Shown: piece by piece, positions 8,790-64,000 of the stretch | How positions within the stretch are numbered: the stretch's first letter is position 1 | Layout of the letters: every line of letters starts with the position of its first letter | Source of the DNA: Macrostomum lignano | Lineage: Eukaryota | Reading direction: 5' to 3' | Length of the DNA: 64,000 nucleotides | Assembly: GCA_002269645.1 (NCBI GenBank) | Contig: NIVC01000068.1 | Location: forward strand, 681,480-745,479 | Position numbers and translations under genes: made by a program | Notes under the pieces: model-generated | What the model was told of the DNA's origin: nothing | Seen by the model: only the letters and a program-made list of their open reading frames with translations | The model's database searches: none

Positions 8790-9190
8790 TCTAAGAATCT
8801 TTTCTATTTTTGCATTCTAAGAATCTTTTCTACTTTGTATTCTAAGAATGTCTTCTACTTTTTGTATTCTAAGAATGTCTTCTACTTTGTATTCTAAAAA
8901 TGTCTTCTACTTTGTATTCTAAGAATGTCTTCTACTTTCTATTCTAAGAATCTCTTCTACTTTATATTCTAAGAATCTCTTCTACTTTGTATTCTAAAAA
9001 TGTCTTCTACTTTATATTCTAAGAGTGTCTTCTACTTTCTATTCTAAGAATCTCTTCTACTTTGTATTCTAAGAATCTCTTCTACTTTCTATTCGAAGAA
9101 TCTCTTCTACTTTGTATTCTAAGAATCTCTTCTACTTTCTATTTGAAAAATCTCTTCTACTTTCTATTCTAAGAATGTCTTCTACTTTTT
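8790..9190. repeat. ~25-bp minisatellite (tattctaagaatctcttctactttg) inside B copy 1
   Basis: About 16 tandem units, period 25 (e.g. 8881 vs 8906). Confidence 0.9.
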
Positions 9191-9230
9191 ATTAGCTTTT
9201 ATTAAAAAACTAATTAAAAAGACCTGAATT

Positions 9231-10760: not shown

Positions 10761-10829
10761 ATTGTTGCACAACCTGAGAAAGCGATTATTGCATTAGCGG
10801 AGGTAACACTTGCACTAGCTACTTGCTGT

Positions 10830-14077: not shown

Positions 14078-14085
14078 CGCAGTAA

Positions 14086-15415: not shown

Positions 15416-16124
15416 CTAATCCATAATCCAGGTCTTTTTAATTAGTTTTTTAATAAAAGCTTTCAATAAAAAATTTATGCTACTTTTATTCTTTTATACA
15501 CTACTAAGATTCGAACCCAGGTTGCTGCATTAGCAGTCCAGTGTGTTCACATCTAGGCTAGCTCTCATTGAAATTGTAAATGAATTTGTAGCACTTATAA
15601 TTCAACACTCACACCAAGTCAATAGAGTAAAAGTTACACGAGGCAGTTATGACATAATCAATTTCTTAGGCAAGTCAGTACCAGTGTCTATTAAAGTTAG
15701 CAATATGGTTACGCAAGATAAATCAAGTATTGTGCTATGCTTCCACACTGCGTTTTCGATACTGTGACGTAATTCAATTCAGTGTCAAAATTCAGCCAGT
15801 ACAGAGACGATAAATAAAAGCCTATTGTTATGATGCAATCTATTTCAGAATCAGAATTCAACCAGTCAGTTTTTTCTCTAGCATTCTTACAATGCATTTC
15901 AAGTCGAAAGAGCTGCTTGACCTTTGCAAAAAAGCATGTTTTTCGAATATTTAATCCCTTTAGCATCGAGCAATTTCTTATCCAAGATGCATGTACCGTC
16001 ACGGGCAAATTTCTGATCGAACAGTGCAAGTTCGAAGAAAATCGGTCCAGCCATTCAGGAGAAAATCGATTTCGTACAAGCAAGCAAGCAAGATTTTCAT
16101 TTTTAGTATATAGAAAGAAGAAAT

Positions 16125-17909: not shown

Positions 17910-17910
17910 T

Positions 17911-18710
17911 GGCTTATCGAGTGCAATAATCCTTGGCTTATCGAGTGCAATAATCCTTGGCTTATCCAGTGCAATAATCCTTGGTTTATCAAGTACAATA
18001 ATCCTTGGCTTCTAATCCATAATCCAGGTCTTTTTAATTGGTTTTTTAATAAAAGCTTTCAATAAAAAATTTATGCTACTTTTATTCTTTTATACACTAC
18101 TAAGATTCGAACCCAGGTTGCTGCATTAGCAGTCCAGTGTGTTCACATCTAGGCTAGCTCTCATTGAAATTGTAAATGAATTTGTAGCACTTATAATTCA
18201 ACACTCACACCAAGTCAATAGAGTAAAAGTTACACGAGGCAGTTATGACATAATCAATTTCTTAGGCAAGTCAGTACCAGTGTCTATTAAAGTTAGCAAT
18301 ATGGTTACGCAAGATAAATCAAGTATTGTGCTATGCTTCCACACTGCGTTTTCGATACTGTGACGTAATTCAATTCAGTGTCAAAATTCAGCCAGTACAG
18401 AGACGATAAATAAAAGCCTATTGTTATGATGCAATCTATTTCAGAATCAGAATTCAACCAGTCAGTTTTTTCTCTAGCATTCTTACAATGCATTTCAAGT
18501 CGAAAGAGCTGCTTGACCTTTGCAAAAAGCATGTTTTTTCGAATATTTAATCCCTTTAGCATCGAGCAATTTCTTAGCCAAGATGCATGTACCGTCACGG
18601 GCAAATTTCTGATCGAACAGTGCAAGTTCGAAGAAAATCGGTCCAGCCATTCAGGAGAAAATTGATTTCGTACAAGCAAGCAAGCAAGATTTTCATTTTT
18701 AGTATATGGA
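17911..18710 (-). mobile_element. Second tandem 5'-partial copy of Helitron B (short 24-bp array)
   Basis: Offset 801 bp from the previous copy (17338 vs 18139), with several private substitutions and indels. 5' end A|TCCATATACTAAAAATG at 18710, with a duplicated head motif out to ~18725. Confidence 0.8.
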
Positions 18711-21616: not shown

Positions 21617-24600
21617 ATGTCAGCTAAGCTTCAACCAGTCAGGCCCCGAATCGAAGTTCACCACTCCCAGCTGGACAACAACAATGAAGACGAGGACAGT
21701 CGCGAGAATCACCGACAAGACGCTGAGCGCGCCGCCATTGTTGCTCGCTACGATGGCAAAGCATCAGGCGGGATTTCTGGCATCAACGAAGCTGACCCGG
21801 TGCCTCCGGACAGCCAGATCGATCACTTTGGCTTCTACCACCCGGCTGCCTCAGGCGGCGTGCCCGCCGCTCTGTCCCTCGCCGAGGCGCGAATTCGCCA
21901 AGCCGACCTGCGCCGCGAGCCGAAGTGGCAGCGGATGCTGCGGCCAGCAAACCAATCTGGCCAGGCCAGCGGCAGCCGCTTCGCCAACTGGCACCGGGTT
22001 GCCGCCGAAACTGACAATGGCGGCAGAGGCGAGACTGCTAGTCGTCGAGCTCTGGATTTTAGCGCCAAGTTTTTAAACCGCCTGTACAAAGGTGTGCCTG
22101 AGAAGTTTCGGTATCCAGTCTGGTACGAACTGTTGGCAATCGATGAAGCCAGGAGATCCTGCCAATGGGGCTATCCGGCCATCAGGGAGTACGCCAGGAA
22201 GCATTCACCGGATGTGCACCAGATTGATTTGGACGTGAATAGGACTTATCGGTTTACGGAGTTCTATCGAGTTCGATATAATGCTAGGCAAAGAGTGTTG
22301 TTTAACGTTCTGGTGGCCTATAGCATGTACAACACGGATGTTGGCTATTGCCAGGTTAGTGGTGCTGGAGAGCTACAAGGTTTGAGCAGTGACGATTCGG
22401 TGAATTGTGGTGGAGGGGTGACAACTGCGGGCCCTGAAGTATCGGTGGATTGTGATGGAAGGGTGACAACTGCGGGCCCTGAAGTATCGGTGGATTGTGG
22501 TGGAGGGGTGACAACTGCGGGCCCTGAAGTATCGGTGGATTGTGGTGGAGGGGTGACAACTGCGGGCCCTGAAGTATCGGTGGATTGTGATGGAGGGGTG
22601 ACAACTGCGGGCCCTGAAGTATCGGTGGATTGTGATGGAAGGGTGACAACTGCGGGCCCTGAAGTATCGGTGGATTGTGGTGAAGGGGTGACAACTGCGG
22701 GCCCTGAAGTATCGGTGGATTGTGGTGGAAGGGTGACAGATGCGAACCCTGAAGTATCGGTGGATTGTGGTGGAGGGGTGACAGATGCGGGCCCTGAAGT
22801 ATCGGTGGATTGTGGTGGAGGGGTGACAACTGCGGGCCCTGAAGTATCGGTGGATTGTGGTGGAGGGGTGACAACTGCGGGCCCTGAAGTATCGGTGGAT
22901 TGTGGTGGAGGGGTGACAGATGCGAGCCCTGAAGTATCGGTGGATTGTGATGGAGGGGTGACAACTGCGGGCCCTGAAGTATCGGTGGATTGTGGTGGAG
23001 GGGTGACAACTGCGGGCCCTGAAGTATCGGTGGATTGTGGTGGAGGGGTGACAGATGCGAGCCCTGAAGTATCGGTGGATTGTGATGGAGGGGTGACAAC
23101 TGCGGGCCCTGAAGAATTGGTGGATTGTGGTGGAGGGGTGACAACTGCGGGCCCTGAAGTATCGGTGGATTGTGGTGGAGGGGTGACAGCACAGCCAAAA
23201 TGCTGTAAACCGATGACAAATCTACCCACCGTACCGCAGGGCATGAGTCAGCTGGCAGCCTTCCTTCTGCTGTACTTCAACGACGAAGAAGAAGCCTTCT
23301 TGGCGCTGACCCAGCTGTTCACGGGACCGCGCCACGGTCTTCACGGCTTTTTTATTCCAAACTTTCCAAAGCTTCTGCGCTACATCGAGCAGTACAGGAC
23401 TTGTCTGCAGAAGCTGATGCCCAGACTCGACAGGCTGATTCACGAGAAGCACTTGGTGCCGGTCACCGCTTACGCTGTTCGGTGGTTCATGCAGGCGTTT
23501 CTCGACTGCATGCCATTTCCCATCACCGTGCGGCTGTGGGACATCTTTGTGGCACTGGGGGAGCAGGTCCTGGTTGCTATGGCGGTTGCCATCATGCGGT
23601 TGCACTCTAAGAGGCTGATGAAGATGAACTCGGACGAAGAGTTTCTGGCCTTCTTGGGAGCTGGACTGCAGAAGGATTTCAGCTATACTGAGGATCAGGT
23701 GAGGGGATCATTTTATGGCTATTGATCATGAGTGTTTATGAGATTTGATTCGGTGTTTATAGAATTTGATGTTTATGTGATATTTATGTTTATGTTTATG
23801 TTTATGTGATGTTTATAGTGTTTATGTGAATCGATCAGGTGTGTTTATGGAATTTGATCAGGTGTGTTTTATGGGATTTGATCAGGTGTGTTTATGTGAA
23901 TCGATCAGGTGTGTTTATGAAATTTGATCAGGTGTGTTTATGGGATTTGATCAGGTGTGTTTATGGGATTTGATCAGGTGTGTTTATGGAATTTGATCAG
24001 GTGTGTTTATGGAATTTGATCAGGTGTGTTTATGGGATTTGATCAGGTGTGTTTATGGAATTTGATCAGGTGTTTCTATGGGATTTGATCAGATTTGTTT
24101 ATGGGATTTGATCAGGTGTGTTTATGGAATTTGATCAGGTGTTTCTATGGGATTTGATCAGATGTGTTCATGGAATTTGATCAGGTGTGTTTGTGAATCG
24201 ATCAGGTGTGTTTATGTGAATCGTTCAGGTGTGTTTATGGGATTTGATCAGGTGTGTTTTATGGGATTTGATCAGGTGTGTTTATGTGAATCGATCAGGT
24301 GTGTTTATGAAATTTGATCAGGTGTGTTTATGGGATTTGATCAGGTGTGTTTATGGGATTTGATCAGGTGTGTTTATGGAATTTGATCAGGTGTGTTTAT
24401 GGAATTTGATCAGGTGTGTTTATGGAATTTGATCAGGTGTGTTTATGGGATTTGGCTAATTTTGTTTATGAGAACTTGTTTGGGTTGTGAATTAATGCAT
24501 GCTATCACATTTCTCGGGGTTGTAGACGCTTAGTAAAAATATTTTTGAGTTTCTTGACAATATACTCGTAGTTTCCAAATCTCATGCTTTCAAAGATTAA

Positions 24601-28728: not shown

Positions 28729-31056
28729 CTATCGAGGCTTCAGGCTCCACACTCTGACAAGGCAGCCAGTCTCATTTTTCTTTTCTCTGCTGCCGCATGC
28801 GCGCCTCGACATCCGAGTGAGCCATCCATACAACTGCCAGGTGTGCAGCGAATTATTCAGCAAACTCAGCGTGTAAATCATATCGAACTTGTTGACCGAT
28901 TCGTCGAACGAGTTCGATATCATGGCAATGATGAAGTTCTGTACGTTGATGCCAACCACCAGAATGAAGAGTGTGTGCAGTACCACGCTGGTGAAGTCCT
29001 GCGCCGGACTGGCAATGTTCAGCAGCAAGCGCAGCGGTGAATAGAACACCGAGTACGGCTTCGCGAACTCCTTGCCGAGAACGTCTGTCATGTAGAACAG
29101 GCTGCCGAACACGATGTACGTCCACAGAATGAAGAGCGGCAGAACGCCGACAAATCTGGAAATGGCTCGTCGGAAGCTGATGCACAGAAAAGCCATGCTT
29201 CGGCATCCGCTCTCGTAGGTTTCAAGTGCGCTAAATAGCGTAAAGAATATGTACAGAACTGCGGAGCACTCGGACACATTGGCTGCCACAGTCAGCTGCA
29301 AGTTTCTTGGGCCCCTACGGCCGAGCACATAGTCTGTGCAGTCAATGGATCTCTCCAGAGTCATTGAGGCAATGATGAAGATAATTCCTGTCATGAAGCT
29401 GAGCGCGTAAGCAGTCAAGAAGTAGTGCGACTGTACCAGATACTCTTTCGGACGTCGGTGCGTCGGTGTCCATTTGCTGAAGCGCCGCGCAAATTGCAGC
29501 TCCTTGAAGCAGTTAAGCAATAGAACGGCGAGTTGAATGACTAGAACTGGGCTCAGGATGAACAGCGAAATTGACCAGTTTTTGAGAATCGTTGTCCTCT
29601 GAATTGGGACACCCCAGAGTGGCGACGTGAACAGCGTGTCGGTATTGTTCGGGTTGGACTTGTCAGTCAGGTAGTGGATCAGAGACGCTGGTGAGCAGTT
29701 GACTCGGACAGTCTTTTCTAGATCCGTGATGCTGTAGTTCAGGCCTTCAGTCATTGACCCATCGCTGCTGTTTGAGCTACTCAAAGCTAGTTTGATCAGA
29801 TCAGTGTACCGCTCAAAGCCCGTCTCAAGCTCATAGCCGATGGCTGCCATGGACACAATGAGGTCGAAGCGGTTGCTGAACGGAGTGAAGGAAGAGGCCA
29901 GTATGCTCAAAGCTACTAAACGCAGCGTCAAAGTGCATTTCATGTCTTTATTGGTCAAATCGATCCAATTCTTCATCACTGGCACATCCTGCAAGCCGGA
30001 CTGTGCGTACTGGTCCGCTTGCTCCGTCGACATCCGCGTCAGCATCAGCAGAGGGTTCTTGTCTCGTCGCTCTCCGTTCATCAGATCGTACTCAGCAAAG
30101 TCATACGCACTTCGCACGCGAATTCCGTGAGCACCTTGCTTAACTAGCAGGTACCCTTCAACGCCAAGGATGAGTCGAACGCTGAAATAGGCGCCTATGA
30201 GCATGGAAAATTCCAACGGTCTCAGGCCTTGGGCATTTTCTATTCGACACAGTCGATGAAGCAGGTTTACCTGTGGGCTGGAGGTTTCGTGCGTTAATAA
30301 AGAGATTCATTGACTGCAGTGATCGGTTGCTAACTGCTGCATTTCAGTCACTAGTTGTAAATTTAAGGTAGGAGTCAACAGGTACAGTGTGCATCATGGA
30401 AGAATTTATCGTCTTTCTGATGAGTCTACCTCTAATGAGTCTACCTCTAATGAGTTGCCTCCGCGACGTAAGCACACCATATATTCATTTAACGCTCTCC
30501 TCCCAGTCTCTACGAGTGTAGTGCATGATTACTTAGGAACTTGTGAGCATGAGCAAAACGAAAACTAATGTAGCATGTACCTATCAGACCATGGATCTTC
30601 TCCGGCTGGCGCCCAAAAAACATGACGTAAGAGTTCAAAAGCCTCCGCTTGAAAAGCTTCGTAGCCGGCAGTTCCCGAGCAGCTGGCCTCGGCCATGCAG
30701 TGCAGCAGGTTCGACCCGGAGTCCCTGTCAGTTAGCAGCAAGAGCTGGGGATGAGTCAGCGCCAGGTAGCGAAGAACCCGCCGACTGGACAGAACGACGC
30801 ACAGCTGCGGCAGCCGACATGCAAATGCCGGTGGTCTGAGCTCTGATAAAGCTGCTGCACTGTGCTCCAGCCTCCAGCTCAGCCGATCCTCCAAGCAGCA
30901 TTCTGGTCCGCTGGCAGTTGCAGCAAGGCTGATCATTCCTTCAACGTCGTCTTCAAGCAGTCGCGCTGTGAGCAACTCGGATGTGCCGGCGTCAAACCAG
31001 AGGCAGTCAGCGCCTCCGCTAACCGAGTTCGTTCTCGAGTTAAACTGCTTATTCAT
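28729..31056 (-). CDS. Divergent TRP-family (TRPV-like) cation channel; coding exons 31056-30581 and ~30277-28729 (~674 aa)
   Basis: Ankyrin-like motifs DSGSNLLHCMAE and RIENAQGLRPLEF, several hydrophobic helices, S5-like RFVGVLPLFILWTYIVFGSLFY, pore-helix-like YSVFYSPLRLLLN, and S6-like LFILVVGINVQNFIIAMISNSF (TRP NxLIAM(M/L)S pattern). Donor AG|GTACAT at 30581 (phase 2); the phase-compatible acceptor CTCCAG| lies at 30277. Confidence 0.62.
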
Positions 31057-38768: not shown

Positions 38769-39727
38769 CAAGCTGTTGAAACCCGCGGATTTTGAACCCG
38801 GGAATTCCAATACCTGGAACTACTTTTGCATGTATTCTGAAATCTAAGGCCATACACAAACAAATTAATGTTAGTAGGATAGAGGTAGAAATAAAATGGA
38901 GCACATTCGTGTAAAATTAGGGTTTGAGGCAAACGTTGATATTGTTTGCTGGGGTACTCCACAGAATGCCAGGCAATGTCTGTCTGACTCTAAAACATGT
39001 ATTGGCAAACTCTGGCCTCTCCCTGACTCTCCCTACGTCCCTTGGATCCTTTAAAATTTCTATCGTCTCTTCTGTTTCCTTTCTTCTCTCTCATCCCTCG
39101 TCTCTCCTCTCTCTTCTCTCCTCTCTTCTCTCGTATCTTCCCTCATCTCTCTTCTCTTTCATCTCTCTTATCTCATCTCTTCCCTATTCTTTTCTCTCTC
39201 CTCTCCTCTCTCCTTTCTACTTTTCGTTTTCTCTCTGCTCTCCTCTCTCCTATCTACTCTTTCGTTTTCTCTCTCCTCCTCTCTCCTCTCTCCCATCTTC
39301 TTTCGTATATTACCTCATCTTTATTCTCTTTCATATCTCTTATCTCATCTCTTCCCTCTTCTTTTCTCTCTCCTCTCCTCTCTCCTCTCTACTTTTTCGT
39401 TTTCTCCCTCCTCTCCTCTCTCCTCTCTCCCCCTCTTCTCTCGTCTCTTCCTTGTCCTCTCTATTCTTTTCTCTCTTCTCCTAACTCTCTCATCTCTCCT
39501 CTCTACTCTTTCCTCTCTCTCTCCTCTCTCCCCTCTTCTCTCGTCTCTTCCCTCACCTCTTTCCTCTCTCTCTTTCCTCTCATCGATATTTTCTTGTTTT
39601 ATCTCTTCTCTCTCCCCTCGTCGCTCGTCTCTTCCCTCACCTCTCTTCTCTCTCGTCTGCTCTTTCATCTCTCCTTTCTCTTCTTTTATCTTTTCTCTCT
39701 TATCTCTTCTCGTTTCTCTCTGCTCTG

Positions 39728-39811
<84 letters not shown>

Positions 39812-41655
39812 TATCTCTCCTCCTCTCTCTACTCTCTCCCCTCTCAATTCTCCTCTTTCCTCTCCTCTCTCCTCACTCACTTCTCTACCTTTGTCTCTCC
39901 TCTCTCCTCTCGTCTCTGTAACCTCTCCTCTGTTCTCTCTACTCTCCCATCTCATCTCTGCTCTCTCCTCTCTACTCGCTCCTCTACTCTCTCCTCTTTA
40001 CTCGCTCTTCTACTCTCTCCTCTTTACTTGCTCCTCTCTACTCTCTCTCTCTCTCTCTCTCTTCTCTGTCTTTCTCTCTTATCTCTCCTCCTCTCTCTAC
40101 TCTCTCCCCTCTCAATTCTCCTCTTTCCTCTCCTCTCTCCTCACTCACTTCTCTACCTTTGTCTCTCCTCTCTCCTCTCGTCTCTGTAACCTCTCCTCTG
40201 TTCTCTCTACTCTCCCATCTCATCTCTGCTCTCTCCTCTCTACTCGCTCCTCTACTCTCTCCTCTTTACTCGCTCTTCTACTCTCTCCTCTTTACTTGCT
40301 CCTCTCTACTCTCTCCTCTCATAGTCCTCTCTCCCTCATCTCTCCTATTATCTTTTATCTTTTCTTTTATCCCCTCTGTCGCTTCTCCTCTCTTCGAATC
40401 GTCTATTCCTTCTTCTTTCCACTCTCATCTGCCCCTCAGCTATAAGCTGGATTCTTTATCTGGCCTTTGAGGTAAAAGTCTGCCCAGCCCTGCTTGAAAA
40501 GCCAGTTTGTGGGACGTAGTACTCTCATGGTTGTTCTCATGCTTTGATCACGTCATCTTTCTTGCCAATTTGCAGCCCTGAAAGGAATTTGTGTATCTTC
40601 AGCTCCACTGCAGTCTGCATCAGTCTAACAACCAAGGAAATACGCATTTCTTAGAAGGCCATTTAATATTTACACAGTACCTTTAAAAGAAACCTAAAAT
40701 TTCCATGGTGTGCCTAATTTAGTAGGGTTGTATTGCATTGCATCGCATCGCCTTTTCATAAATCTTTCGCTTTTACAAACCATGCTGGATAGTGGATTCC
40801 CTCGATTTGCCAATTGCCAATTGCCATCCACTGTTAAACTGCTGCAGAGTTTGCCAATACAGAGGGGAGGGCAGTGGTTAGAATTTCTCACTAAACTGTT
40901 ATGGCTAAACGTAGCCTCTCCACTCTCGGGGTGCAGAGAAGGTTATAAATAAAGTTATTCCAAAACACTGTACATTTGCTATGTACATTCAGTCCTATCG
41001 CCTGACCCTTCGTCTGGCTCTGGGGGAATGAGTGAGTGAGTGGCACAAACAACAGAAAAAGCAGACAAACTTCACATGCTTACAGTTTCTTTTTCGGTTG
41101 AGTTAAAGAGTTGAAACTTTACATTTAGACAGAGAATGAGTCAATGAAGAATTGTGTCAAGTTTGAAGTCAATCGCTTTACGTGGAGCAAACTTATGGCA
41201 GCTGAAAGTTAGTCAATTTTGAAACCCTTTTACACATCTGAGCCCAGATCGGGAAAGAGAGGCAGGCGGGCGGAGGTTGGGGTGGTTGCTACGCTGAAAA
41301 AAACAGCCTAACTTTAAAAGTGCACAGCACCGCTCAGGATTAACTTGGAGACTCGAAATTTTACATGATTGTGCCAAAATAGTTAAAGATTATCTGTGTC
41401 AAATTTGAAGAGAATCGGTAGAAGTGGAGCGGCGCTATGGAGGATTAAGTGAAAAAATCGCGCATTTTGAGCAGTTTTTTGTACTTTTAGGTAGGAAGAC
41501 TTGAGTCTGGGAAATTTAAAGGTAGCCTAAGACATTCTCCGTAGTGCGTTTAGGGTGGGTGTAAAGTTTGGTGTAATTTGGTTGAGTGGTTTGGGAGTCC
41601 ATAGCGAAGTAATTTGTCCACAGACAGACAGAGTTTTGATTTTTATAGGTAGAGA
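38769..41655 (-). mobile_element. Non-autonomous Helitron-like element C (~2.9 kb)
   Basis: Minus-strand 5' end A|TCTCTACCTATAAAAATCAAAACTCTGTCTGTCTGT at 41655. 3' hairpin aaaatccgcgggttt then CAACAGCTTG|T at 38769 (CTTG rather than CTRR). Inserted at an AT dinucleotide with no TSD. Confidence 0.6.
39040..40440. repeat. CT-rich low-complexity tract with a (CT)n microsatellite and an internal ~280-bp duplication
   Basis: (CT)n at ~39735-39797; ~39795-40035 is repeated at ~40063-40320. Source of the spurious Leu/Ser and Glu/Arg ORFs. Confidence 0.95.
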
Positions 41656-42143: not shown

Positions 42144-45100
42144 ATGTCAGACCAAACACCAACCAGTAATGCCCACTTGGATGAGCCGCAGTCTGATCTG
42201 TCAGATAATAACTCTTCTTCCGCTGTTGAAGCAGCTGAAGCATTGCCCGAATCGCCATTAAATAAAGCTCGAATCCCAGCTGCCCTGATGCCCAACAGGT
42301 CCAGTGTGGCCTGTCAGACTGGAGAAAAGGGCGAGGACAAGAAGCAAAGGGGTCACCCATTGAGCTTCCTGGATGCCGATCCGCAGGCTCTGGGTCAGGC
42401 CTATCCCAATCCGGCTATGGATAAAATGTTTCAAGACCTCGAGCGCACCATAATGGAATCTACTAAAGGCATTGACGAGATGAACCAGCGAATGGAGCAG
42501 GAGAGGAAAGATCAGGAGCGGGTTCGCGACACCAAACACGTGCCGTTGCCATTGAAGAGCGCCGGTCGGAGTATGGACAGCTTAATGGAGGACCTGTGCT
42601 CCATGCTGTTTGACTTGAATGGCGACAGCGGTCGGAGGCCGAAGCTGCGCTACTTGGATCAGCGCGCCAACGCTGTGCTGTGCTGTCAGAGTCTGGCCGC
42701 TTGGCTATCGAGTGGCGGCTTTGGGAGCGGCTTTGCTAAACGACTGCAGGTTGTGCAATTTCATTGGTTCTTAGTGATTGCCATTCCATTCATTGGGGTC
42801 TTCTTAATTTAGCTGCGAAACAAGAGATATCTAATTGCATCTAAAGACTACACGTTAAGCTAGCATATCTCTACTTTTGTAGGATTGTTCTACAGATTCT
42901 GTAAGCTTGTAGGATTGATCTACAGATTCTGTAAGCTTGTACTATTGTTCTACAGAATCTGTAAGCTTGTAGGATTGTTCTACAGATTCTGTGTAAGCTT
43001 GTAGGATTGATCTACAGGATCTGTATAAGCTTGTATTGATCTACGGATTTTGTAAGCTTGTAGGATTGATCTACAGATTCTGTAAGCTTGTAGGATTTAT
43101 CTACAGGATCTGTATAAGCTTGTAAGCTGTAGGCTTTTAGGATTGTTCCACAGATTCTGTAAGCTCGTGGGATTGGTCTACCGAATCTGTAGGTTCATAG
43201 AGTTGATCTCTAGAATCTGCTAGTCTCGTAGCACTGATCTACAAAATCTACAGCTCAAGCTACACGTCATGCAACGCTTTTTATAAACTATTTTTATTGC
43301 TTTATCTCAAGTTGATTCAGTAATGTCACTAATGCTACTATCAGTAGGGCTATTGAGGCAGTCGCTATAAATTTTCTTTCGCTTGAACCTCGCCGCACCC
43401 AGGCTGACCTATCGGAATGGATACCGAAAGTGTGGCGCCTCGGAGGCGGCGAGCTGGCCTTCCACATGGACAAGCGGGACAGCCTCGTGCTGGCCTGTCG
43501 CCGAGCACTGCTGTCAAGATTTCCCAACCTGCTGGAGACCGGATTCGAGTGCCTGTTCAGCAAGCCGCCAGTGATCTATCTGCATCCGACTACTTCAACA
43601 AATCTGATGAATTATTTGTCTTGCCAATTGTGCTTGCCGAAGACTTGCTTTCGTATTGTGAGCGTCTTAGAACAACCTTTTTTGTTATTAGCTCCCCCCT
43701 TGATCCTATCTCGGCGCCCCGTATAAATACCTATTTGGCACTCCTAGAAATCTCTATTTGGCACCCTTAGAAATCCCTATTTGGCACCCTTAGAAATCCC
43801 TATTTGGCACCCTTAGAAATCCCTATTTGGCACCCTTAGAAATCCCTATTTGGCACCCTTAGAAATCCCTATTTGCTATCCTTAGAAATCCCTATTTGCT
43901 ATCCTTAGAAATCCCTATTTGCTATCCTTAGAAATCCCTATTTGCTATCCTTAGAAATCCCTATTTGCTATCCTTAGAAATCCCTATTTGCTATCCTTAG
44001 AAATCCCTATTTGCTATCCTTAGAAATCCCTATTTGCTATCCTTAGAAATCCCTATTTGCTATCCTTAGAAATCCCTATTTGGCACCCTTAGAAATCCCT
44101 ATTTGCTATCCTTAAAAATCCCTATTTGGCACCCTTAGAAATCCCTATTTGCTATCCTTAGAAATCCCCATTTGCTATCCTTAGAAATCCCTATTTGCTA
44201 TCCTTAGAAATCCCCATTTGGTATCCTTAGAAATCCCTATTTGCTATCCTTAAAAATCCCTATTTGGCACCCTTAGAAATCCCTATTTGCTATCCTTAGA
44301 AATCCCCATTTGCTATCCTTAGAAATCCCTATTTGCTATCCTTAGAAATCCCCATTTGCTATCCTTAGAAATCCCTATTTGCTATCCTTAAAAATCCCTA
44401 TTTGGTATCCTTAGAAATCCCTATTTGCTATCCTTAGAAATCCCTATTTGCTATCCTTAGAAATCCCTATTTGCTATCCTTAAAAATCCCTATTTGGTAT
44501 CCTTAGAAATCCCTATTTGGTATCCTTAGAAATCCCTATTTGCTATCCTTAGAAATCCCCATTTGGTATCCTTAGAAATCCCTATTTGGCACTCCTAGAT
44601 TCATAGAAATCCCTATTTGCTATCCTTAGAAATCCCTATTTGGCACCCTTAGAAATCCCTATTTGCTATCCTTAAAAATCCCTATTTGGCACCCTTAGAA
44701 ATCCCTATTTGCTATCCTTAGAAATCCCCATTTGGTATCCTTAGAAATCCCTATTTGCTATCCTTAGAAATCCCTATTTGCTATTCTTAGAAATCCCTAT
44801 TTGGCACCCTTAGAAATCCCTATTTGGCACTCCTAGAATCATAGAAATCCCTATTTGCTATCCTTAGAAATCCCTATTTGGCACCCTTAGAAATCCCTAT
44901 TTGCTATCCTTAGAAATCCCTATTTGGCACTCTTAGAAATCCCTATTTGGCACTCCTAGAATCATAGAAATCCCTATTTGCTATCCTTAGAAATCCCTAT
45001 TTGGCACCCTTAGAAATCCCTATTTGCTATCCTTAGAAATCCCTATTTGGCACTCTTAGAAATCCCTATTTGGCACTCCTAGAATCATAGAAATCCCTAT

Positions 45101-48100
45101 TTGCTATCCTTAGAAATCCCTATTTGGCACCCTTAGAAATCCCTATTTGGCACTCCTAGATTCATAGAAATCCCTATTTGCTATCCTTAGAAATCCCTAT
45201 TTGCTATCCTTAGAAATCCCTATTTGCTATCCTTAGAAATCCCTATTTGCTATCCTTAGAAATCCCTATTTGCTATCCTTAGAAATCCCTATTTGGCACC
45301 CTTAGAAATCCCTATTTGGCACTCCTAGATTCATAGAAATCCCTACTTGGCGCCACTTCGAATCTCTGTTTAGGCACCTGTTACTGTTCAGTGCCAGTGA
45401 GTGTTGCTAACCAAATTCCCCAAAACCAACAAAACCCCATCTGCAGTTGCCAGGCAGTTCGCACAACCCCGACTGCATCGATCATTCCGAATTGCAACGC
45501 TTAGTCGAGTCGGACTCTGGCGAAGGTCGAACTCCGCTATTCGTGCAGGCCATGTGCGGCACCCGCCTGACCGGCTCCTATGATCGGCTGGGCCGCGTGG
45601 CCGCCATCTGTCGGCAGCACCGGGTCTGGCTGCACGTTCAGGGCTCGAAGCTGTCCCAGCTGGCGCTAAACTCTGTACCAACTAGTTTGAGACCGTTGCT
45701 AGGCGGCAGCTCGGCTGTCTCCTCCTGTCTGATGGAGTTCGACCAGTGGCTGGGCTATCCGGGTCTGGTCAGCGCCACTGTGCTGCGGATTGCTAGGGAC
45801 GGCTCTCTGCTGCACAAGGTGAGGAAAGAGTAGCTACCGCCTGAGCTCCCTGACTGATTTGTGAATGATCTGGATAGCAACTGGGTGAGTAGCCGTGACT
45901 GATTTGTGAATGATCTGGGTAGCAACTGGGTGAGTAGCCCTGACTGATTTGTGAATGATCTGGGTAGCAACTGAGTGAGTAAGCCTTGGCTGATTTGTGA
46001 ATGATCTGGGTAGCAACCGCCTGCATGATTTAAAGAAATTGAGATACCCTAATTATACGTACAATAATTCGTAATTAGAATAACCTAAATATTGCAATAC
46101 AGGTTAGAAATATAGCTAATTTCCTATAGTAGCGCAGATAGGAAGTTAAATATATATTGAGACAACACAAACTAACTTGAATAACTTGCAGACAACAGAT
46201 GAAGACGAAGCCTCCGCTACCAAAGCCAATAAGCATAGTGACAAAAGAACCACAGAAGCTGCGACGCCAAGCAACAACGACAAGCCAAAAGGCGAAGAAG
46301 AAGAAGAAGAAGAGCAAACTGAGCAGCAATTCGGGCAGCAGAGGAAGCAGCAGCCGCTGACAGCCCCGGCCGATATTCGCTGCCTATCCTACCAGCCAAT
46401 GTCTCTCCTGCCGCTCTGGTTCGTCCTGCAAGCGATCGGCTACGACAATATCCAAGCTCGAGTCCGCAATGTCGAACAGACGGTCAAAGCCACTTTAACG
46501 GCGCTAAAAACAGCGCCAGACATTGAACTGATAGAGCCGCAGTCTCTATCCGACAATGACCGAGCAGATATCAAAGCCAATAGCAATCTGCTAGGCCAGA
46601 TGCTGAGCTTTCTGATTGATTTTGAATTCGCGCCAACTGTTCTGCTGTTCCGGTATTGTCCGCCCGAGCAGCGCTGCGAACTGGCTATTGATAGCGGTGC
46701 TAATGAGGATAAGGTGGCTAATAAGGCCATTAGCGCAGCTAAAAGTACAAACCAGGCCAGGGCGCCCTACGCGCGCATCGGCAGTGACCGGCGAAATAGC
46801 GGCGATGCTCATCATGAGCAGGCTAAAGATAAAACTGATGAGGAAGCTGCAGAAGCTGCGGAGAACTCGTCTAAACCTGCCCATGATGATTCTGAAGACG
46901 CTCAGGAAGAGGTGAAGAAAATTGTGCGAGTATTTTGACCAGGATAATCTCACTAGAGAGACCCAGGTTAATCTCCCCAAGAGATATCCAGGATAATCTC
47001 CCTTAAAGATACCCAGGATAATCTCACTGGAGGTACTCAAGATAATCTCCCCCAGAAATACCCGATATAATCTCCTCTAGAAATACCCGAGATAATCTCC
47101 CCAGAAATACCCGGGATAATCTACCCTAGAAATACCCGGGATAATCTCCTCTAGAAATACCCGAGATAATCTCCCTTCAGAAATGCCCGAGATAATTTCT
47201 CCTAGAAATACCTGGGATAATCTTCCCTTGATATACCTTTGATAATCTCCCCAGAAATACCCGGGATAATCTCCCATAGAAATACTCTGGATAATATTCT
47301 CTGGAGATACACGGGATAATCACTTCTAAAGTATCTGCTCACTCAAGCTACAATGAGCGCCCAATCAATCAATGGATTCTTTCAGCGCTTGCAGCAGCAA
47401 CTGGCCCAACGCCGTCTACTAGGAGAGAATCGCTGGCTAGTGGACAGCCTCCGCTCAGCGCTGCCTCATCTGCAGTCTCTGTCCGTCATCAAAATTCGCC
47501 TACGTAACGGAGATAGTGAATCGAACGCCTCCAGGTACTGCATCCGGTTCTGCCCGATCGAGTCGTGCGCCGACTGGCTGCCAGATCACGTTGACGGCCT
47601 GGCCGAAGCTCTGAGCAGTTCGCTTCGCCTGCTCGACTCTACTAGGCGAGCTCGATCGGAGTTTATAAAACTGGCCGAGGCTAGCGAAGGCCGATTGATG
47701 TACGTTGACATGCCCGACTGGCCTGGCCTTGGCGGCCTGCGCTATCGGCTTAGGCCGGAGGATTTCGGCGATGAAGATGAAGAGGAGAAGCAGCAGAAGG
47801 AGGCTGAGACGGCAACTGGCGGCCCGACTGTTGAGGATGTCGGCGAGGAAAAGGTTGGTTTAATTTTTTTTTAGTTTATTTCTCTCACTATGCTACTACC
47901 AATAGTTGCAGTTTGCTAAATAATATATTGAGCGTTAAAGTGTATCTTAATTTAAATTAAAATTTACTGTCATAATTCTAGGTTCAATCCTTACTTCCGG
48001 CGACTTGTTCAAGCTGCAACCTTAGCTTACTTCTGGTAGCTAGTTCAAGCTGCAACCCTTAGTTCCGTCACTAGGGCAAGCTACAACCATACTTCCGGTT

Positions 48101-57685: not shown

Positions 57686-58556
57686 TTTAGCATAACCACA
57701 CAATCTTGAGGTCAGGGCGCCATCGTTGGGGCGCCAGCACCAATGTGGATTTATTTACAAAATGCGAAAAAGTTCAAGGGATTTATAAATTTTACATCGC
57801 CACAGTGAGCAAAATCCGTCAAAACAGACGCTCAGAACCTGACTGCTGGGGTGGGTAGTAAAAAGCATGTATCTATGACAATAAGCTGAGCAAATTGATT
57901 TCAATTTGGACGAAATAAGTGAGCTGTATCCCTACAACCAAGCTTATACGAGCGTATTCCTGTCTCCCTCTCGTCCCTCTCTTCTGCCTCTCTCGGGTCC
58001 TGTTTTTCTTTGCGTCAAAAAGCAACTTTATCATTTCGTCTAGCGTTGTTTTATCCTGTATATTTACAACGTCGCATTTATTCTTCTTAATCGTGTGAGA
58101 GCCATGCATATTATATTCAAAAGCGCGCAAGTTTGCAATAAATTTTTTGCCTCAATTGACTTCAGCTAGCTAGTTGATATCTAATGTCCATTTGCCTCGT
58201 GTTCAAGCTAAACTAGCACGTCTTCTCCTTTTCTCATTCTACCTAAAGGTAAGCGGACCCAAAGCCGATACGCGGAGAGATGCATGCAGGGTGCGCGCAG
58301 CCAAAGGTTCGGACAGAGATTTCTTGCTGCTTTGTTCGCTAAGGGTGGCCGCGTCAGAGGTCGGGTGGTCCAGCCGGCCAATAGCTCGAAACGGCCTCAT
58401 CGTTCCACTATAAATAGTCGGCGAACTAAAAGAAATAGCAAACTAGTTCTTTTAAGAGAAGAAAAGATTCAAAGTAGAAGGACAACGAGTATTCTAAAAA
58501 CTGTCAAAACTTTTTTTAAACTTCTTGCATTGAAACCAGAAAATTTGGGAAAAAAT

Positions 58557-61500
58557 ATGTGGCGCTGCCACTACGCCCTGCATTTGCTGATTGCAGCATT
58601 ACTCGTCTGCAGTAAGTTTATTAAACCATTGAAGTTTGACTGCCAAATTTTTGACGGCTTAAGTTTAAATGTATCTTTAATACATAGGAGTCTCAAAACT
58701 CAAATATCATCAACATCTTTGTAGAACTCTCAGCAAGCACGACTGAAATTCCAAATCAGTCCACAACAGCTGAAGCGGTAGCTCCATCTAGTGAACCTGC
58801 CACTTCCGAAGCTCCAACTCTACCAGTCCCATCTGAGGCTCCTACTGCACCTGCTCCATCTGACGCTCCGAGTGCGCCTCCATCGAGCGGACCTGCCCCG
58901 TCCGACGCTCCCAGTGCACCTCCATCGAGCGGACCTGCTCCATCCGACGCTCCCAGTGCACCTCCATCGAGCGGACCTGCTCCAAGTGATGCTCCGAGTG
59001 CAACTCCATCAAGCGGACCTGCTTCAAGTGACGCTCCGAGTGCGCCTCCATCGAGCGGACCTGCTTCAAGTGACGCTCCGAGTGCGCCTCCATCGAGCGG
59101 ACCTGCTCCAAGTGACGCTCCGAGCGCAGCTACATTGAGCGGACCTGCCCCGTCCGACGTTCCGAGTGCGCCTCCATCGAGCGGACCTGCTCCATCGGAC
59201 GCTCCGAGTGCGCCTCCATCAAGCGGACCTGCCCCGTCCGACGCTCCCAGTGCACCTCCATCGAGCGGACCTGCTCCATCCGACGCTCCCAGTGCACCTC
59301 CATCGAGCGGACCTGCTCCATCCGACGCTCCCAGTGCACCTCCATCGAGCGGACCTGCTCCAAGTGATGCTTCGAGTGCAACTCCATCAAGCGGACCTGC
59401 TCCAAGTGATGCTCCGAGTGTACCTCCATCGAGCGGACCTGCTCCAAGTGATGCTCCGAGTGCGCCTCCATCGAGCGGACCTGCTCCAAGTGATGCTCCG
59501 AGTGCGCCTCCATCGAGCGGACCTGCCCCGTCCGACGCTCCCAGTGCACCTCCATCGAGCGGATCTGCTCCATCCGACGCTCCCAGTGCACCTCCATCGA
59601 GCGGACCTGCCCCGTCCGACGCTCCCAGTGCACCTCCATCGAGCGGACCTGCTCCATCCGACGCTCCCAGTGCACCTCCATCGAGCGGACCTGCTCCAAG
59701 TGATGCTCCGAGTGTACCTCCATCGAGCGGACCTGCTTCAAGTGATGCTCCGAGTGCGCCTCCATCGAGCGGACCTGCTCCAAGTGATGCTCCGAGTGCG
59801 CCTCCATCGAGCGGACCTGCCCCGTCCGACGCTCCCAGTGCACCTCCATCGAGCGGACCTGCTCCATCCGACGCTCCCAGTGCACCTCCATCGAGCGGAC
59901 CTGCTCCATCCGACGCTCCCAGTGCACCTCCATCGAGCGGACCTGCTCCAAGTGATGCTTCGAGTGCAACTCCATCAAGCGGACCTGCTCCAAGTGATGC
60001 TCCGAGTGCGCCTCCATCGAGCGGACCTGCTCCATCCGACGCTCCGAGTGCATCTCCATCGAGCGGACCTGCTCCATCCGACGCTCCCAGTGCAACTCCA
60101 TCAAGCGGACCTGCTCCAAGTGACGCTCCGAGTGCGCCTCCATCGAGCGGACCTGCCCCGTCCGACGCTCCAAGCGCAGCTACATTGAGCGGACCTGCCC
60201 CTTCCGACGTTCCGAGTGCGCCTCCATCGAGCGGACCTGCTCCATCTGACGCTCCGAGTGCGCTTCCATCGAGTGGACCTGCCGCGTCAGACGCTCGAGT
60301 GCGCCTCCATCGAGCGGACCTGCCCCGTCCGACGCTCCAAGCGCAGCTACATTGAGCGGACCTGCCCCTTCCGACGTTCCGAGTGCGCCTCCATCGAGCG
60401 GACCTGCTCCATCTGACGCTCCGAGTGCGCTTCCATCGAGTGGACCTGCCGCGTCAGACGCTCCGAGTGCGCCTCCATCGAGCGGACCTGCCCCGTCCGA
60501 CGCTCCGAGTGCGCCTCCATCGAGCGGACCTGCTCCGAGTGATGCTCCGAGTGCGCCTCCATCAAGCGGACCTGCTTCAAGTGACGCTCCGAGTGCGCCT
60601 CCATCGAGCGGACCTGCCCCGTCCGACGCTCCGAGCGCAGCTACATTGAGCGGACCTGCCCCGTCCGACGTTCCGAGTGCGCCTCCATCGAGCGGACCTG
60701 CTCCATCCGACGCTCCCAGTGCACCTCCATCGAGCGGACCTGCTCCAAGTGACGCTCCGAGCGCAGCTACATTGAGAGGACCTGCCCCGTCCGACGCTCC
60801 CAGTGCACCTCCATCGAGCGGACCTGCTCCAAGTGATGCTCCGAGTGAAACTCCATCAAGCGGACCTGCTTCAAGTGACGCTCCGAGTGCGCCTCCATCA
60901 AGCGGACCTGCTCCAAGTGACGCTCCGAGCGCAGCTACATTGAGCGGACCTGCACCGTCCGACGTTCCGAGTGCGCCTCCATCGAGCGGACGTGCTCCAT
61001 CTGACGCTCCGAGTGCGCCTCCATCGAGCGGACCTGCCCGTCCGACGCTCCCAGTGCACCTCCATCGAGCGGACCTGCTCCATCCGACGCTCCCAGTGCA
61101 CCTCCATCGAGCGGACCTGCTCCAAGTGATGCTCCGAGTGCAACTCCATCAAGCGGACCTGCTTCAAGTGACGCTCCGAGTGTACCTCCATCGAGCGGAC
61201 CTGCTCCAAGTGATGCTCCGAGTGCGCCTCCATCGAGCGGACCTGCTTCATCTACATCACCAGCGGCATTGACGACAGTTGCGCCAACAACAGCTGCAAC
61301 AACGTGTTTAGTTGGCTATTGCAAAAATGACGGTGTTTGTTCGATCGTCAACAATGAGCGTACCTGCCAATGCCCTGTTAATTGGGGAGGAGATCATTGT
61401 GAAGAACGTATGTGTTTTTTCTAGCCTCTTGATACAATTATCTATGTTGCATTGCTGAAAAAAACATTTTTTCTCCTATTATAGGGGCAAAGATTGTTCG

Positions 61501-64000
61501 ACCAAAGGTCGTCGTGCAGAAAGACTACGATGAGGACATGAGAGACAACAACAGCCCTGCCGCGCAGAATTTCTGGTTAGCATTCGTACGATTTGTAAGT
61601 TAAACGCTTATTTTAACTAATGAAACTAAGAATACGAGTGTACAAAGTACAAAGTTGCCTTTGTTTCTTTTTTATCATTTTTAAATGATCAACTACAGAT
61701 GCTGGCAGTATTTCGTCGCTCAAGCAACCCAGCATTTGCCAACGCAAGGCACACGCTGATACTGATCAGCCTTGGACCAGGATCTGTTATCACTGAGTTC
61801 GACGACAAAATTAGCGGGCCACAGGTAGACACAATCGAAACAGAGGCAATTTCTTCTGATATCGAGTCTGGCATTTCGAATCTGGCATCATCGAACGAAT
61901 CATTCTCCAACTTTACCGTAAGCAATGTATCCTCGGCAGGTAAGTGGATCTCAGTGTGAAAATTTGTGAAGTTTTCTTTATCCGAACCTACTAAAATAGG
62001 ATCACTCGATATTTCTGCATAACATTGCCTGTTTTAGTGCCCAGCCTGTGCTCCAACACCAGCTGTTCCATTTATGCCTCTTGCGACAACAGCTCTACAA
62101 ACGTTTCAACCCTCTGCACCTGCAACTTCGGTTATAGAAGCGACTCCAACAATTCATATCCTGGTTACCTCTGCACCCAGGAGTGCAGTTCTACCAGCTG
62201 CTCCACCGATGAGACATGCATGGAAAACATTGGTGCCAATTTCACATGTAACACAATAACCACAGTGGGCCCGACAGTCGCTCCTGGCACGACTGCAGAG
62301 CTCAGCTCTACAGAAGCTCCAAGAGCAACAGAAATTTCATCAGCATCAACAGCCGATATTGGCTCGACAGAAACTCCTGAATCCTCAGCAGCTCCGGTAT
62401 CGACAGAAACTCCTGGATCTCCAGCAGCTCCGGTATCGACAGAAACTCCTGGATCGCCAGAAGCTCCGGTATCGACAGAAACTCCTGGATCCCCAGAAGC
62501 TCCGGTATCGACAGAAACTCCTGGATCCCCAGCAGCTCCAGTATCGACCGAAACTCCTGGATCCCCAGCAGCTTCGGTATCGACAGAAGCTCCTGGAACC
62601 CCAGCAGCTCCAGTATCGACAGAAACTCCTGGATCCCAGCAGCTCCGGTATCGACAGAAACTCCTGGATCCCCAGCAGCTTCGGTATCGACAGAAACTCC
62701 TGGATCCCAGCAGCTTCGGTATCGACAGAAACTCCTGGATCCCCAGCATCTTCGGTATCGACAGAAACTCTTGGATCCCCAGAAGCTCCAGTATCGACTG
62801 AAACTCCTGGATCCCAGCAGCTTCAGTATCGACAGAAACTCCTGGATCCCCAGCAGCTCCAGTATCGACTGAAACTCCTGGATCCCAGCAGCTTCAGTAT
62901 CGACAGAAACTCCTGGATCCCCAGCAGCTCCAGTATCGACTGAAACTCCTGGATCCCCAGCAGCTCCAGTATCGACTGAAACTCCTGGATCCCAGCAGCT
63001 CCAGTATCGACAGAAACTCCTGGATCCCCAGCAGCTTCGGTATCGACAGAAACTCCTGGATCGCCAGAAGCTCCGGTATCGACAGAAACTCCTGGATCCC
63101 CAGAAGCTCCGGTATCGACAGAAACTCCTGGATCCCCAGCAGCTGCAGTATCGACCGAAACTCCTGGATCCCCAGAAGCTCCGGTATCGACTGAAACTCC
63201 TAGATCCCCAGCAGCTTCGGTATCGACAGAAACTCCTGGATCCCCAGCAGCTCCAGTATCGACAGAAACTCCTGGATCCCCAGCAGCTCCGGTATCGACA
63301 GAAACTCCTGGATCCCCAGCAGCTCCAGTATCGACCGAAACTCCTGGATCCCAGAAGCTCCGGTATCGACAGAAACTCCTGGATCCCCAGCAGCTCCAGT
63401 ATCGACAGAAACTCCTGGATCCCCAGCAGCTCCAGTATCAACTGAAACTCCTGGATCCCAGCAGCTTCAGTATCGACAGAAACTCCTGGATCCCCAGCAG
63501 CTCCAGTATCGACTGAAACTCCTGGATCCCCAGCAGCTTCGGTATCGACAGAAGCTCCTGGATCCCCAGCAGCTCCAGTATCGACAGAAACTCCTGGATC
63601 CCCAGCAGCTCCAGTATCGACTGAAACTCCTGGATCCCCAGCAGCTCCAGTATCGACTGAAACTCCTGGATCCCAGCAGCTTCGGTATCGACAGAAACTC
63701 CTGGATCCCCAGCAGCTTCGGTATCGACAGAAACTCCTGGATCCCCAGCAGCTCCGGTATCGACAGAAACTCCTGGATCTCCAGCAGCTCCGGTATCGAC
63801 TGAAACTCCTGGATCCCCAGAAGCTCCGGTATCGACAGAAACTCCTGGATCCCCAGAAGCTCCGGTATCGACAGAAACTCCTGGATCCCCAGCAGCTCCG
63901 GTATCGACAGAAACTCCTAGATCTCCAGCAGCTCCGGTATCGACTGAAATTCAACTTCTCCTCCATCGAGCGGACCTGCCGTCGAGCCTTCAACTTCATC
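58557..64000 (+). CDS. Mucin/proteoglycan-like protein: signal peptide - PAS/SG repeat - EGF - SEA - EGF-like - PTS repeat; exons 58557-58611, 58725-61407, 61485-61594, 61699-61939, 62038->64000 (3' end outside the window; 1-nt frameshifts in the repeats)
   Basis: MWRCHYALHLLIAALLVC signal-like exon with an A|GTAAGT donor. (PAPSDAPSAPPSSG)n. EGF CLVGYCKNDGVCSIVNNERTCQCPVNWGGDHC. SEA-like DYDEDMRDNNSPAAQNF...GPGSVITEF. Cys-rich CSNTSCSIYASC...CTCNFGY. (STETPGSPAAPV)n. Splice phases 1,1,0,1 are consistent. Confidence 0.8.
58850..61250 (+). repeat. 42-bp coding tandem repeat (PAPSDAPSAPPSSG), ~57 units
   Basis: Variation is mostly synonymous at third positions in the PAS frame. Confidence 0.95.
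62390..63945 (+). repeat. 36-bp coding tandem repeat (STETPGSPAAPV), ~43 units
   Basis: tcgacagaaactcctggatccccagcagctccggta units; many have CCC instead of CCCC after GGAT. Confidence 0.95.

Follow-up and report, generated by a model that had tools for sequence, protein, structure and literature searches.

A Macrostomum lignano gene predicted to encode a mucin-like glycoprotein with a SEA module between two repeat arrays

The 64,000-nucleotide (nt) stretch of Macrostomum lignano DNA that was analysed here (the window; positions 681,480 to 745,479 of contig NIVC01000068.1) ends within the gene Mlig021149.g2 on the plus strand, and we estimate a probability of about 0.7 that this is a real, transcribed gene for a large mucin-like glycoprotein of the secretory pathway. 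The gene joins a predicted signal peptide to two long arrays rich in Pro, Ser and Thr (PTS), between which lies a core of EGF and SEA modules, and it likely belongs, as an expressed gene, to a small and lineage-restricted family of mucin-like glycoproteins that have a SEA module. A first-pass annotation, made from the letters of the DNA, had described it as an unrecognised modular mucin or proteoglycan with two different repeat domains around an EGF-SEA-EGF core. The modular, mucin-like organization with two different PTS arrays around this core holds, and the parts of that description that had to be given up or narrowed are named below.

Gene model, repeat arrays and family

Three-frame translation and splice-site mapping gave five exons that are joined by canonical GT-AG introns in consistent phases. 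Exon 1 (58557..58611, plus strand, as all features of this gene) contains the ATG and the putative signal peptide MWRCHYALHLLIAALLVC in 18 codons plus 1 nt, and its GTAAGT donor is in phase 1; judged by eye, the n-region of the peptide is charged and its hydrophobic core is 12 residues long. Exon 1 of the paralog Mlig000697.g4 (MGRPKLLQAIIAVCLLCQ, L002 7543-7597) is identical to it in size and phase. A putative core promoter can be read upstream (58378..58417), with CCAAT at 58378-58382 and TATAAATAG at 58409-58417, ~148 nt before the ATG, and the paralog has the TATA-like TATTAAATA ~140 nt upstream of its own ATG. Exon 2 (58725-61407) begins with a unique Ser/Thr/Pro/Glu-rich lead-in (KLSASTTEIPNQSTTAEAVAPSSEPATSEAPTLPVPSEAPTAPA, 58725..58848), continues with array 1 and ends with a linker and a six-Cys EGF module (CLVGYCKNDGVCSIVNNERTCQCPVNWGGDHC, 61254..61407). 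In the structural model described below, exon 3 (61485..61594) would code for strand beta1 of the SEA domain and for the start of its helix alpha1, and exon 4 (61699..61939) for the remainder of the domain, including the predicted scissile Gly-Ser bond at 61780-61785 (GPG/SVITEF). The intron within helix alpha1 lies at the same place in the window gene (FVRF/MLAV) and in Mlig000697.g4 (FELY/MRAC). Exon 5 (62038 to beyond 64000) starts with the six-Cys EGF-like module 2 (CSNTSCSIYASCDNSSTNVSTLCTCNFGYRSDSNNSYPGYLC, 62038..62175), followed by a four-Cys module, a linker and array 2. The signal-peptide exon, the EGF module, the SEA-like domain and the two further Cys modules of the first-pass annotation were therefore all recovered, with the amendment that the last of them, according to the whole-core alignment A1 of the family, is a truncated third EGF-like module with four of the six cysteines (CSSTSCSTDETCMENIGANFTC, 62185..62249).

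The non-repeat core is 100% identical to the GenBank entry “hypothetical protein BOX15_Mlig021149g2, partial” of M. lignano and 97% identical to UniProt A0A1I8HM67, an “EGF-like domain-containing protein”. Calling the gene unrecognised was therefore half true, as exons 2-5 had already been deposited under these names. The deposited partial protein splices exons 2, 3, 4 and 5 exactly as in our model, and the M. lignano annotation was guided by RNA-seq, using a genome-guided transcriptome built with StringTie, TACO and TransDecoder (PMC5730564). A transcript-derived model thus joins exons 2-5, and the lack of any spliced transcript, which had been named as an outcome that would speak against the gene, is not what is found.

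Tandem Repeats Finder resolves array 1 (58849..61253) into 57.3 copies of a 42-nt unit that codes for 14 residues (87% matches, consensus PSSGPAPSDAPSAP), and array 2 (62364..63949) into 44.3 copies of a 36-nt unit that codes for 12 residues (92% matches, consensus STETPGSPAAPV). The earlier estimates of ~57 copies of a 14-residue repeat and ~43 copies of a Thr/Glu-rich 12-mer come close to these values. Array 1 extends over ~800 residues and is composed of 31% Pro, 29% Ser, 22% Ala and 7% Asp (62% Pro, Ser and Thr together), while array 2 covers at least 580 residues with 19% Pro, 19% Ser, 16% Thr and 10% Glu (54% Pro, Ser and Thr). Both arrays have the character of the long PTS tandem-repeat domains of SEA-type membrane mucins.

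Codon differences of the repeat units from their consensus were counted in each frame. In the claimed frame of array 1, 131 differences are synonymous and 48 non-synonymous, and none creates a stop codon; the second frame would give 16 synonymous, 178 non-synonymous and 6 stop changes, and the third frame 17, 155 and 27, respectively. Third codon positions account for 133 of the 226 base differences in this array. In array 2, the claimed frame shows 25 synonymous and 24 non-synonymous differences and again no stop. As far as can be judged from the sequence, the variation among the units is the pattern of a translated sequence under purifying selection. Open reading frames (ORFs) on the minus strand or in other frames over the repeats, such as the one of 563 residues at 62308-63999 (minus strand), were rejected as by-products of the repeats, since the codon-position test favours only the plus-strand frames given here.

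With the alignment of the family as input, AlphaFold 2 models residues 38-153 of the core in the order beta-alpha-beta-beta-alpha-beta at a predicted local distance difference test score (pLDDT) of 82-92, with Gly101-Ser102 in the turn between the strands 90-99 and 102-112; a single-sequence AlphaFold prediction of the core was uninformative (pLDDT 34.6). The best Foldseek matches of the model in the PDB are SEA domains, namely those of TMPRSS6 (E=1.3e-4), of murine and human MUC16, and the TMPRSS SEA domain 2e7v, all with a probability of 1.0. Profile searches of the PDB detected the TMPRSS11D SEA domain with alignment A1 (E=0.0077), and weak matches with the SEA-only alignment A2, the best of which was the SEA domain 2e7v (E=0.088). 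Gly-Ser is invariant in all six family sequences in both alignments, it is the sole invariant column of the SEA-only alignment, and it is followed by V or I and then by V, I or L. The model hence supports the assignment as SEA domain by fold, and it supports the position of the cleavage-type motif GSVI at the structurally right place, the beta2/beta3 hairpin, as the first-pass annotation had supposed. In case of the EGF modules, modules 1 and 2 have six cysteines in EGF spacing, and the family profile matches Notch, selectin and EGF structures with E values down to 1.7e-11. Module 2 scores 14.1 bits with Pfam EGF_3, and the homologous module of paralog P0004 reaches 41.2 bits with a cut-off of 28.5; module 3 was modelled at pLDDT 32-37. 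A SEA or EGF profile match, which the first-pass annotation had made a test of its proposal, was obtained in part: Pfam scores of the window protein alone stay below threshold, the SEA domain is recognised by its fold, and the family profile matches EGF structures. The EGF-SEA-EGF-EGF' core, the prime denoting the truncated module, contains nine N-glycosylation sequons.

What relatives does this core have? In an exhaustive phmmer search over 1.84 billion representative proteins, those that cover the SEA region came from Macrostomum only, plus one echinoderm protein, and the remaining matches, the organisms of which were mostly not looked up, cover EGF module 1 only. The family comprises Mlig000697.g4 (PAA64830.1), A0A1I8IR67 (with A0A1I8GUW9), A0A1I8GA25, a transcript from the Logan runs SRR28338164 and SRR28338165 (P0006), and XP_072050660.1 of Amphiura filiformis. 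By sequence comparison, these are true homologs, with 26-35% identity over EGF-SEA-EGF-EGF, the Amphiura protein being aligned over EGF-SEA only. The paralogs consist of a signal peptide, PTS arrays, EGF-SEA-EGF-EGF, a transmembrane (TM) segment and a tail; in Mlig000697.g4 (L002), exon 1 is followed by 58.5 copies of GSPPPSGTPPM, 17 copies of PTGPQPTGPAS, the four modules, the TM segment and the tail. In the homologs, the TM segment directly follows the last EGF module, and the Macrostomum proteins have a conserved tail (FKRYS ... GRQYF or similar). The PTS units of the paralogs are unrelated in sequence to those of the window gene, and the Amphiura protein, unlike the window gene, has no PTS region at all. 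A0A1I8GA25 is a model from the ML2 assembly that fuses SEA exons like those of the window gene to the latter half of a nearby TM-type paralog, which suggests that members of the family lie in tandem; within the window, tblastn found no second member. In A0A1I8HM67, likewise an ML2 model, array-1 type repeats occur also after the Cys modules. Both of these ML2 models are artefactual, and the PTS arrays of A0A1I8HM67 were translated in the wrong frame (LHRADL..., SIERTC...).

Frame breaks, contig end and alternative readings

Several points weigh against the reading of Mlig021149.g2 as a functional gene of this kind. In the assembled sequence, 10 breaks interrupt the frame, which would reach a stop near 62800, and exon 1 lies outside the deposited partial protein. 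Taken alone, the window protein scores 19.2 bits with Pfam SEA (PF01390; E=1.4e-3; gathering cut-off 26.4), and its EGF module 1 scores 16.2 bits with Pfam EGF (cut-off 21.5). In favour of the two assignments, the near-identical A0A1I8GA25 is just at the SEA cut-off (26.7 bits), and the best PDB sequence matches of module 1 are EGF and TGF-alpha (E=1e-3). The family alignment that was given to AlphaFold 2 is just six sequences deep. EGF module 3 stops after Cys4, and Cys5, Cys6 and the TM segment of the paralogs are absent. No TM segment, glycosylphosphatidylinositol (GPI) signal or stop codon is found within the assembled sequence, so that the product may or may not be the “surface protein” of the first-pass annotation. 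Moreover, no expression pattern or phenotype of the gene was found in the literature or in M. lignano transcriptomic supplements. Mlig021149 is absent from the supplements searched, as is Mlig000697 from the two that were also searched for it, and we found no paper that names Mlig021149 and none that pairs Macrostomum lignano with a SEA domain.

The nature of the frame breaks is important in this context. All 10 are 1-nt deletions in C runs, two of them in array 1 (~60296, CC to C; ~61039, CCCC to CCC) and eight in array 2, where eight 35-nt units all show the same change from GGATCCCCAG to GGATCCCAG (CCCC to CCC) at the same spot. When the breaks are bridged, with an X at each, the frame runs through 1,687 codons without a single stop. 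For M. lignano, PacBio reads were assembled with Canu, and the result was polished by Pilon using short reads (PMC5730564). In such arrays, short reads have no unique placement. The paralog Mlig000697.g4, which is clearly intact, has a like break in its own repeat. As all breaks are losses of one nucleotide in C runs, as the polishing reads are not uniquely placeable, and as the intact paralog is broken likewise, the breaks are very probably PacBio homopolymer consensus errors and not signs of pseudogene decay. In the paralog, the break (-1) is at ~8017 of L002 (NIVC01001710.1), within the 33-nt array that codes for GSPPPSGTPPM. Because of it, the deposited protein of this paralog is “partial” and lacks ~640 PTS residues and the signal peptide.

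In principle, the gene could be a decaying pseudogene, i.e. a duplicate that has lost the end of EGF module 3, the TM segment and the tail, and that now accumulates frameshifts. The breaks as assembled, the truncated module and the missing TM segment would be accounted for in this way, and the M. lignano assembly does contain substantial redundancy in duplicated blocks (PMC5730564). However, breaks that are confined to single losses in C runs are the signature of long-read homopolymer errors, a pseudogene would not be expected to keep 1,687 codons free of stops or an excess of synonymous over non-synonymous changes in array 1, the same kind of break occurs in a paralog that is intact, and a transcript-derived gene model exists at the locus. 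Pseudogene decay is therefore improbable, and a functional gene with consensus errors in its repeats is the preferred explanation.

The window ends with base 64000, which is the last base of the 745,479-nt contig NIVC01000068.1, and the record holds no downstream sequence. As the contig stops inside the repeats of the gene, the 3' end of the gene is missing. Shortly before this end, 10 nt from it, array-1 type sequence returns in yet another frame (SPPSSGPAVEP, 63957..63990), so that the return of a PSSGPA motif at the end of the window, which had been noticed before, is real (as PPSSGPA). A 21-nt string of the returning segment, CCTCCATCGAGCGGACCTGCC, occurs also in array-1 units, and the final 45 nt of the contig are array-1 type DNA in a different frame. 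On the other side of array 2, EGF module 3 ends with FTCNTITT, where the paralog continues with FTCDCFTGYTGNSC and then the TM segment, and it passes within the same exon into array 2, a PTS array that is unrelated to the first.

This arrangement raises the question whether array 2 and the returning array-1 motif belong to the gene at all, or whether they are foreign and were joined to it by a mis-assembly of repeats at the contig end. That the contig terminates in repeats, and that its last 45 nt turn into array-1 type DNA in a different frame, would fit such a chimera. The junction itself argues against it: unique sequence grades into the repeat, the transcript-derived protein P0001 covers the junction including the first four units of array 2, and the independent ML2 model A0A1I8HM67 leaves the truncated module in the same way, albeit frame-shifted (GPDSRSWHDC corresponding to GPTVAPGTTA), before it enters repeats. 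A chimera is for these reasons very improbable, and array 2 is best regarded as a part of Mlig021149.g2. The missing 3' end was also sought by other means, but a protein search with array 2 and the terminal motif gave no match, a profile search with the family alignment returned just the known members and EGF-only proteins, and A0A1I8HM67 had no matching contig among the contigs searched.

Glycosylation and comparison with known mucins

The first-pass annotation had proposed a glycosaminoglycan (GAG)-like brush on one side of the SEA domain, based on repeats that each hold one Ser-Gly with an Asp nearby. The count is right, since Ser-Gly occurs 56 times in array 1 and each unit has a single Asp, but the proximity is not what it seemed: 54 of the 56 sites have their nearest acidic residue at +6, and only one site has an acidic residue within four positions on either side. 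There is neither an SGxG motif nor an acidic patch at -2 to -4, and Pro occupies the positions -3, -2, +2 and +4. The human xylosyltransferase XT1 strictly needs Gly or Ala at +1, favours an acidic environment (typically a patch at -2 to -4), and has been shown to accommodate Pro at -3 and +3 (PMC5992326). The 56 Ser-Gly dipeptides hence provide the acceptor pair that a xylosyltransferase needs, while the nearby acidic residues or SGxG motifs of a proteoglycan core are not found.

Could the 56 Ser-Gly sites nevertheless be xylosylated and bear chondroitin or heparan sulfate, so that a proteoglycan brush would face a mucin brush across the SEA domain? In favour of this possibility, perlecan, agrin and IMPG2 are examples of GAG-bearing proteins with SEA domains. 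Furthermore, no strict consensus exists for GAG attachment (PMC13038410), and each unit, having its Asp within eight residues of Ser-Gly, complies with the loose rule that was used for chondroitin proteoglycan candidates of C. elegans, i.e. Ser-Gly with an acidic residue within ~8 residues (PMC2063922). Against this stand the distance of the acidic residues, the lack of SGxG and of an acidic patch, and Pro at +2 and -2, positions other than those at which XT1 has been shown to tolerate it, in an enzyme that prefers acidic surroundings. In addition, the arrays of the paralog (GSPPPSGTPPM, PTGPQPTGPAS) contain no acidic residue whatsoever, so that the Pro-Ser-Gly context appears to be a family trait that is unrelated to acidity. 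The GAG-like brush thus satisfies just the loosest of the rules, and a GAG-bearing proteoglycan is an unlikely product of this gene. Pro follows every Ser of the array 1 unit at +2 or +3, as in typical acceptor sites for mucin-type O-GalNAc glycosylation. M. lignano is known to make Gal-beta1-3-GalNAc O-glycans (PMC6410801). Going by the sequence context, mucin-type O-glycosylation of the arrays is most likely and serves as our default reading.

Mechanistically, the N-terminal signal peptide would send the protein to the secretory pathway, where the two arrays would most likely become densely O-glycosylated in the mucin-type manner and extend as brushes, with the folded EGF-SEA-EGF-EGF' core between them. 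By analogy to MUC1, MUC3, MUC12, MUC13 and MUC17, the SEA domain probably cleaves itself during folding at Gly-Ser-Val-Ile in the beta2/beta3 hairpin, and the two resulting subunits would be held together non-covalently and could be separated by force. In the window copy, the second PTS array would take the place of the last third of EGF module 3 and of the TM segment. As the contig ends inside the gene, the protein may be either anchored or secreted, and it may act at a surface or in mucus. The adhesive proteins Mlig-ap1 and Mlig-ap2 were considered and set aside, as their domains differ (vWD, C8, TIL, TSP-1, LDLa and C-type lectin) and include no SEA domain (PMC6410801).

Among the known systems, MUC13 has the order signal peptide, PTS repeats, EGF, SEA, EGF, EGF, TM segment and cytoplasmic tail, and the flatworm family is like MUC13 in this order, and close to MUC3, MUC12 and MUC17. 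The presence of PTS, SEA, EGF and TM domains in Muc13, though not their order, is covered by PMC1552070. Further likenesses of the window gene to the vertebrate SEA mucins are the Gly-Ser-Val motif at the predicted beta2/beta3 hairpin of SEA, and the PTS array in one large exon beside a short signal-peptide exon. There are also clear differences: the exhaustive phmmer search detected no sequence-level orthology, the window gene has a PTS array after the Cys modules, a truncated EGF module 3 and no TM segment in the assembled sequence, and its array 1 is rich in Ser, Ala and Pro but nearly free of Thr. The TM segment and cytoplasmic tail of SEA-type membrane mucins are not found up to the contig end, and because the available sequence lacks this TM feature, we leave membership in the membrane-mucin class open.

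Agrin, a heparan sulfate proteoglycan, has mucin-like, Ser/Thr-rich regions on either side of its SEA domain and EGF modules further on, and therefore the idea of two brushes around a SEA domain is not new. Agrin and perlecan, the latter compared for its domain I, both bear GAGs, but the window gene has none of the follistatin, laminin-G, LDLa or Ig modules of these proteins, and the acidic SGD-type attachment sites of perlecan have no counterpart in its Pro-rich, non-acidic Ser-Gly context. The vertebrate-specific IMPG1 and IMPG2 (SPACR and SPACRCAN) have a mucin-like domain in the centre along with SEA domains and EGF-like repeats, in IMPG2 also a TM segment, and they carry O-glycans and chondroitin sulfate; their two SEA domains around one mucin domain are the inverse of the layout in the window gene, and no sequence similarity was detected. 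As far as its summary in PMC4948705 goes, a system described in 2007 resembles the window gene in that PTS and SEA regions alternate in a possibly secreted protein, and it differs in that the window gene has EGF modules flanking SEA and one SEA domain before the contig end. “Mucin1-like” proteins of the sea anemone Actinia tenebrosa comprise a signal peptide, PTS, SEA and a TM segment (PMC9080433) and, likened here by description, share the invertebrate combination of PTS and SEA with the window gene, whereas no EGF modules have been reported for them. Taken as a whole, Mlig021149.g2 is best classed as a gene for a SEA-module mucin-like glycoprotein, which is a kind of system already known.

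A vertebrate origin has been stated for SEA-type membrane mucins (PMC9578598), and the M. lignano family has a modest bearing on the claim that they arose only there. It is conceivable, albeit doubtful, that the PTS-EGF-SEA-EGF(-EGF)-TM cassette of the MUC13 and MUC3/12/17 type is not a vertebrate invention, that its true homologs are the family of Macrostomum and the EGF-SEA-EGF-TM protein of the echinoderm, and that the window copy is a derived form in which an insertion of array 2 separates Cys4 from Cys5 in the membrane-proximal EGF module, with the other half of this module, the TM segment and the GRQYF tail lying beyond the contig end. Such a split would be structurally tolerable, because the disulfides of EGF modules pair C1-C3, C2-C4 and C5-C6. 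If this were true, the gene would code for a membrane mucin that bears a brush on either side of a SEA joint sensitive to force.

If confirmed, a SEA-module mucin-like family would be available in a tractable, transparent flatworm for which transgenesis and RNA interference are established, and SEA autoproteolysis and mucin brushes could be tested in vivo at an epithelial surface. The gene also illustrates a technical point: long PTS arrays break both the M. lignano assembly, by contig ends and homopolymer frameshifts, and its annotation, by partial and fused models, and the number of mucin-like genes in this genome has therefore probably been underestimated.

Other features of the window

Further genes and repeats lie upstream of Mlig021149.g2. 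An uninterrupted ORF of 937 residues at 4729-7542 (plus strand) codes for a hAT-family transposase (DUF4371, 55 bits; hAT C-terminal dimerisation domain, 44 bits), and the element may be intact or recently active. At 21617-23725 (plus strand) lies a RabGAP-TBC gene (144 bits), in which the catalytic YxQ motif is the exact point where the TBC domain is split (..VGYCQ / GMSQL..). Between the two parts lie 17.6 copies of the 45-nt unit VSVDCGGGVTTAGPE (22397-23188), through which the frame stays open; this is probably an intron that lacks stops by chance, with an in-frame repeat insertion as a less likely alternative. The ORF at 47353-47874 (plus strand) has PDXDC1-like central domains (26.9 and 25.4 bits) and, by these matches, it probably represents a single exon from a gene with a pyridoxal-dependent decarboxylase domain. 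An ORF of 495 residues at 28729-30216 (minus strand) gave no Pfam match at E<=1e-3, and with its several hydrophobic segments it resembles a piece of a multi-pass membrane protein.

Satellites are dense in the window, with arrays at 14079-17205, 43725-45318, 39081-40320, 8787-9615 and other positions. They include 130 copies of a 24-nt unit, which has relatives at 9228-9615, 10407-10802 and 17910-18011, as well as 68 copies of a 23-nt unit, and a CT-rich tract of 1.2 kb shows strong strand skew. This density fits the high repeat content that hampered the assembly of the genome.

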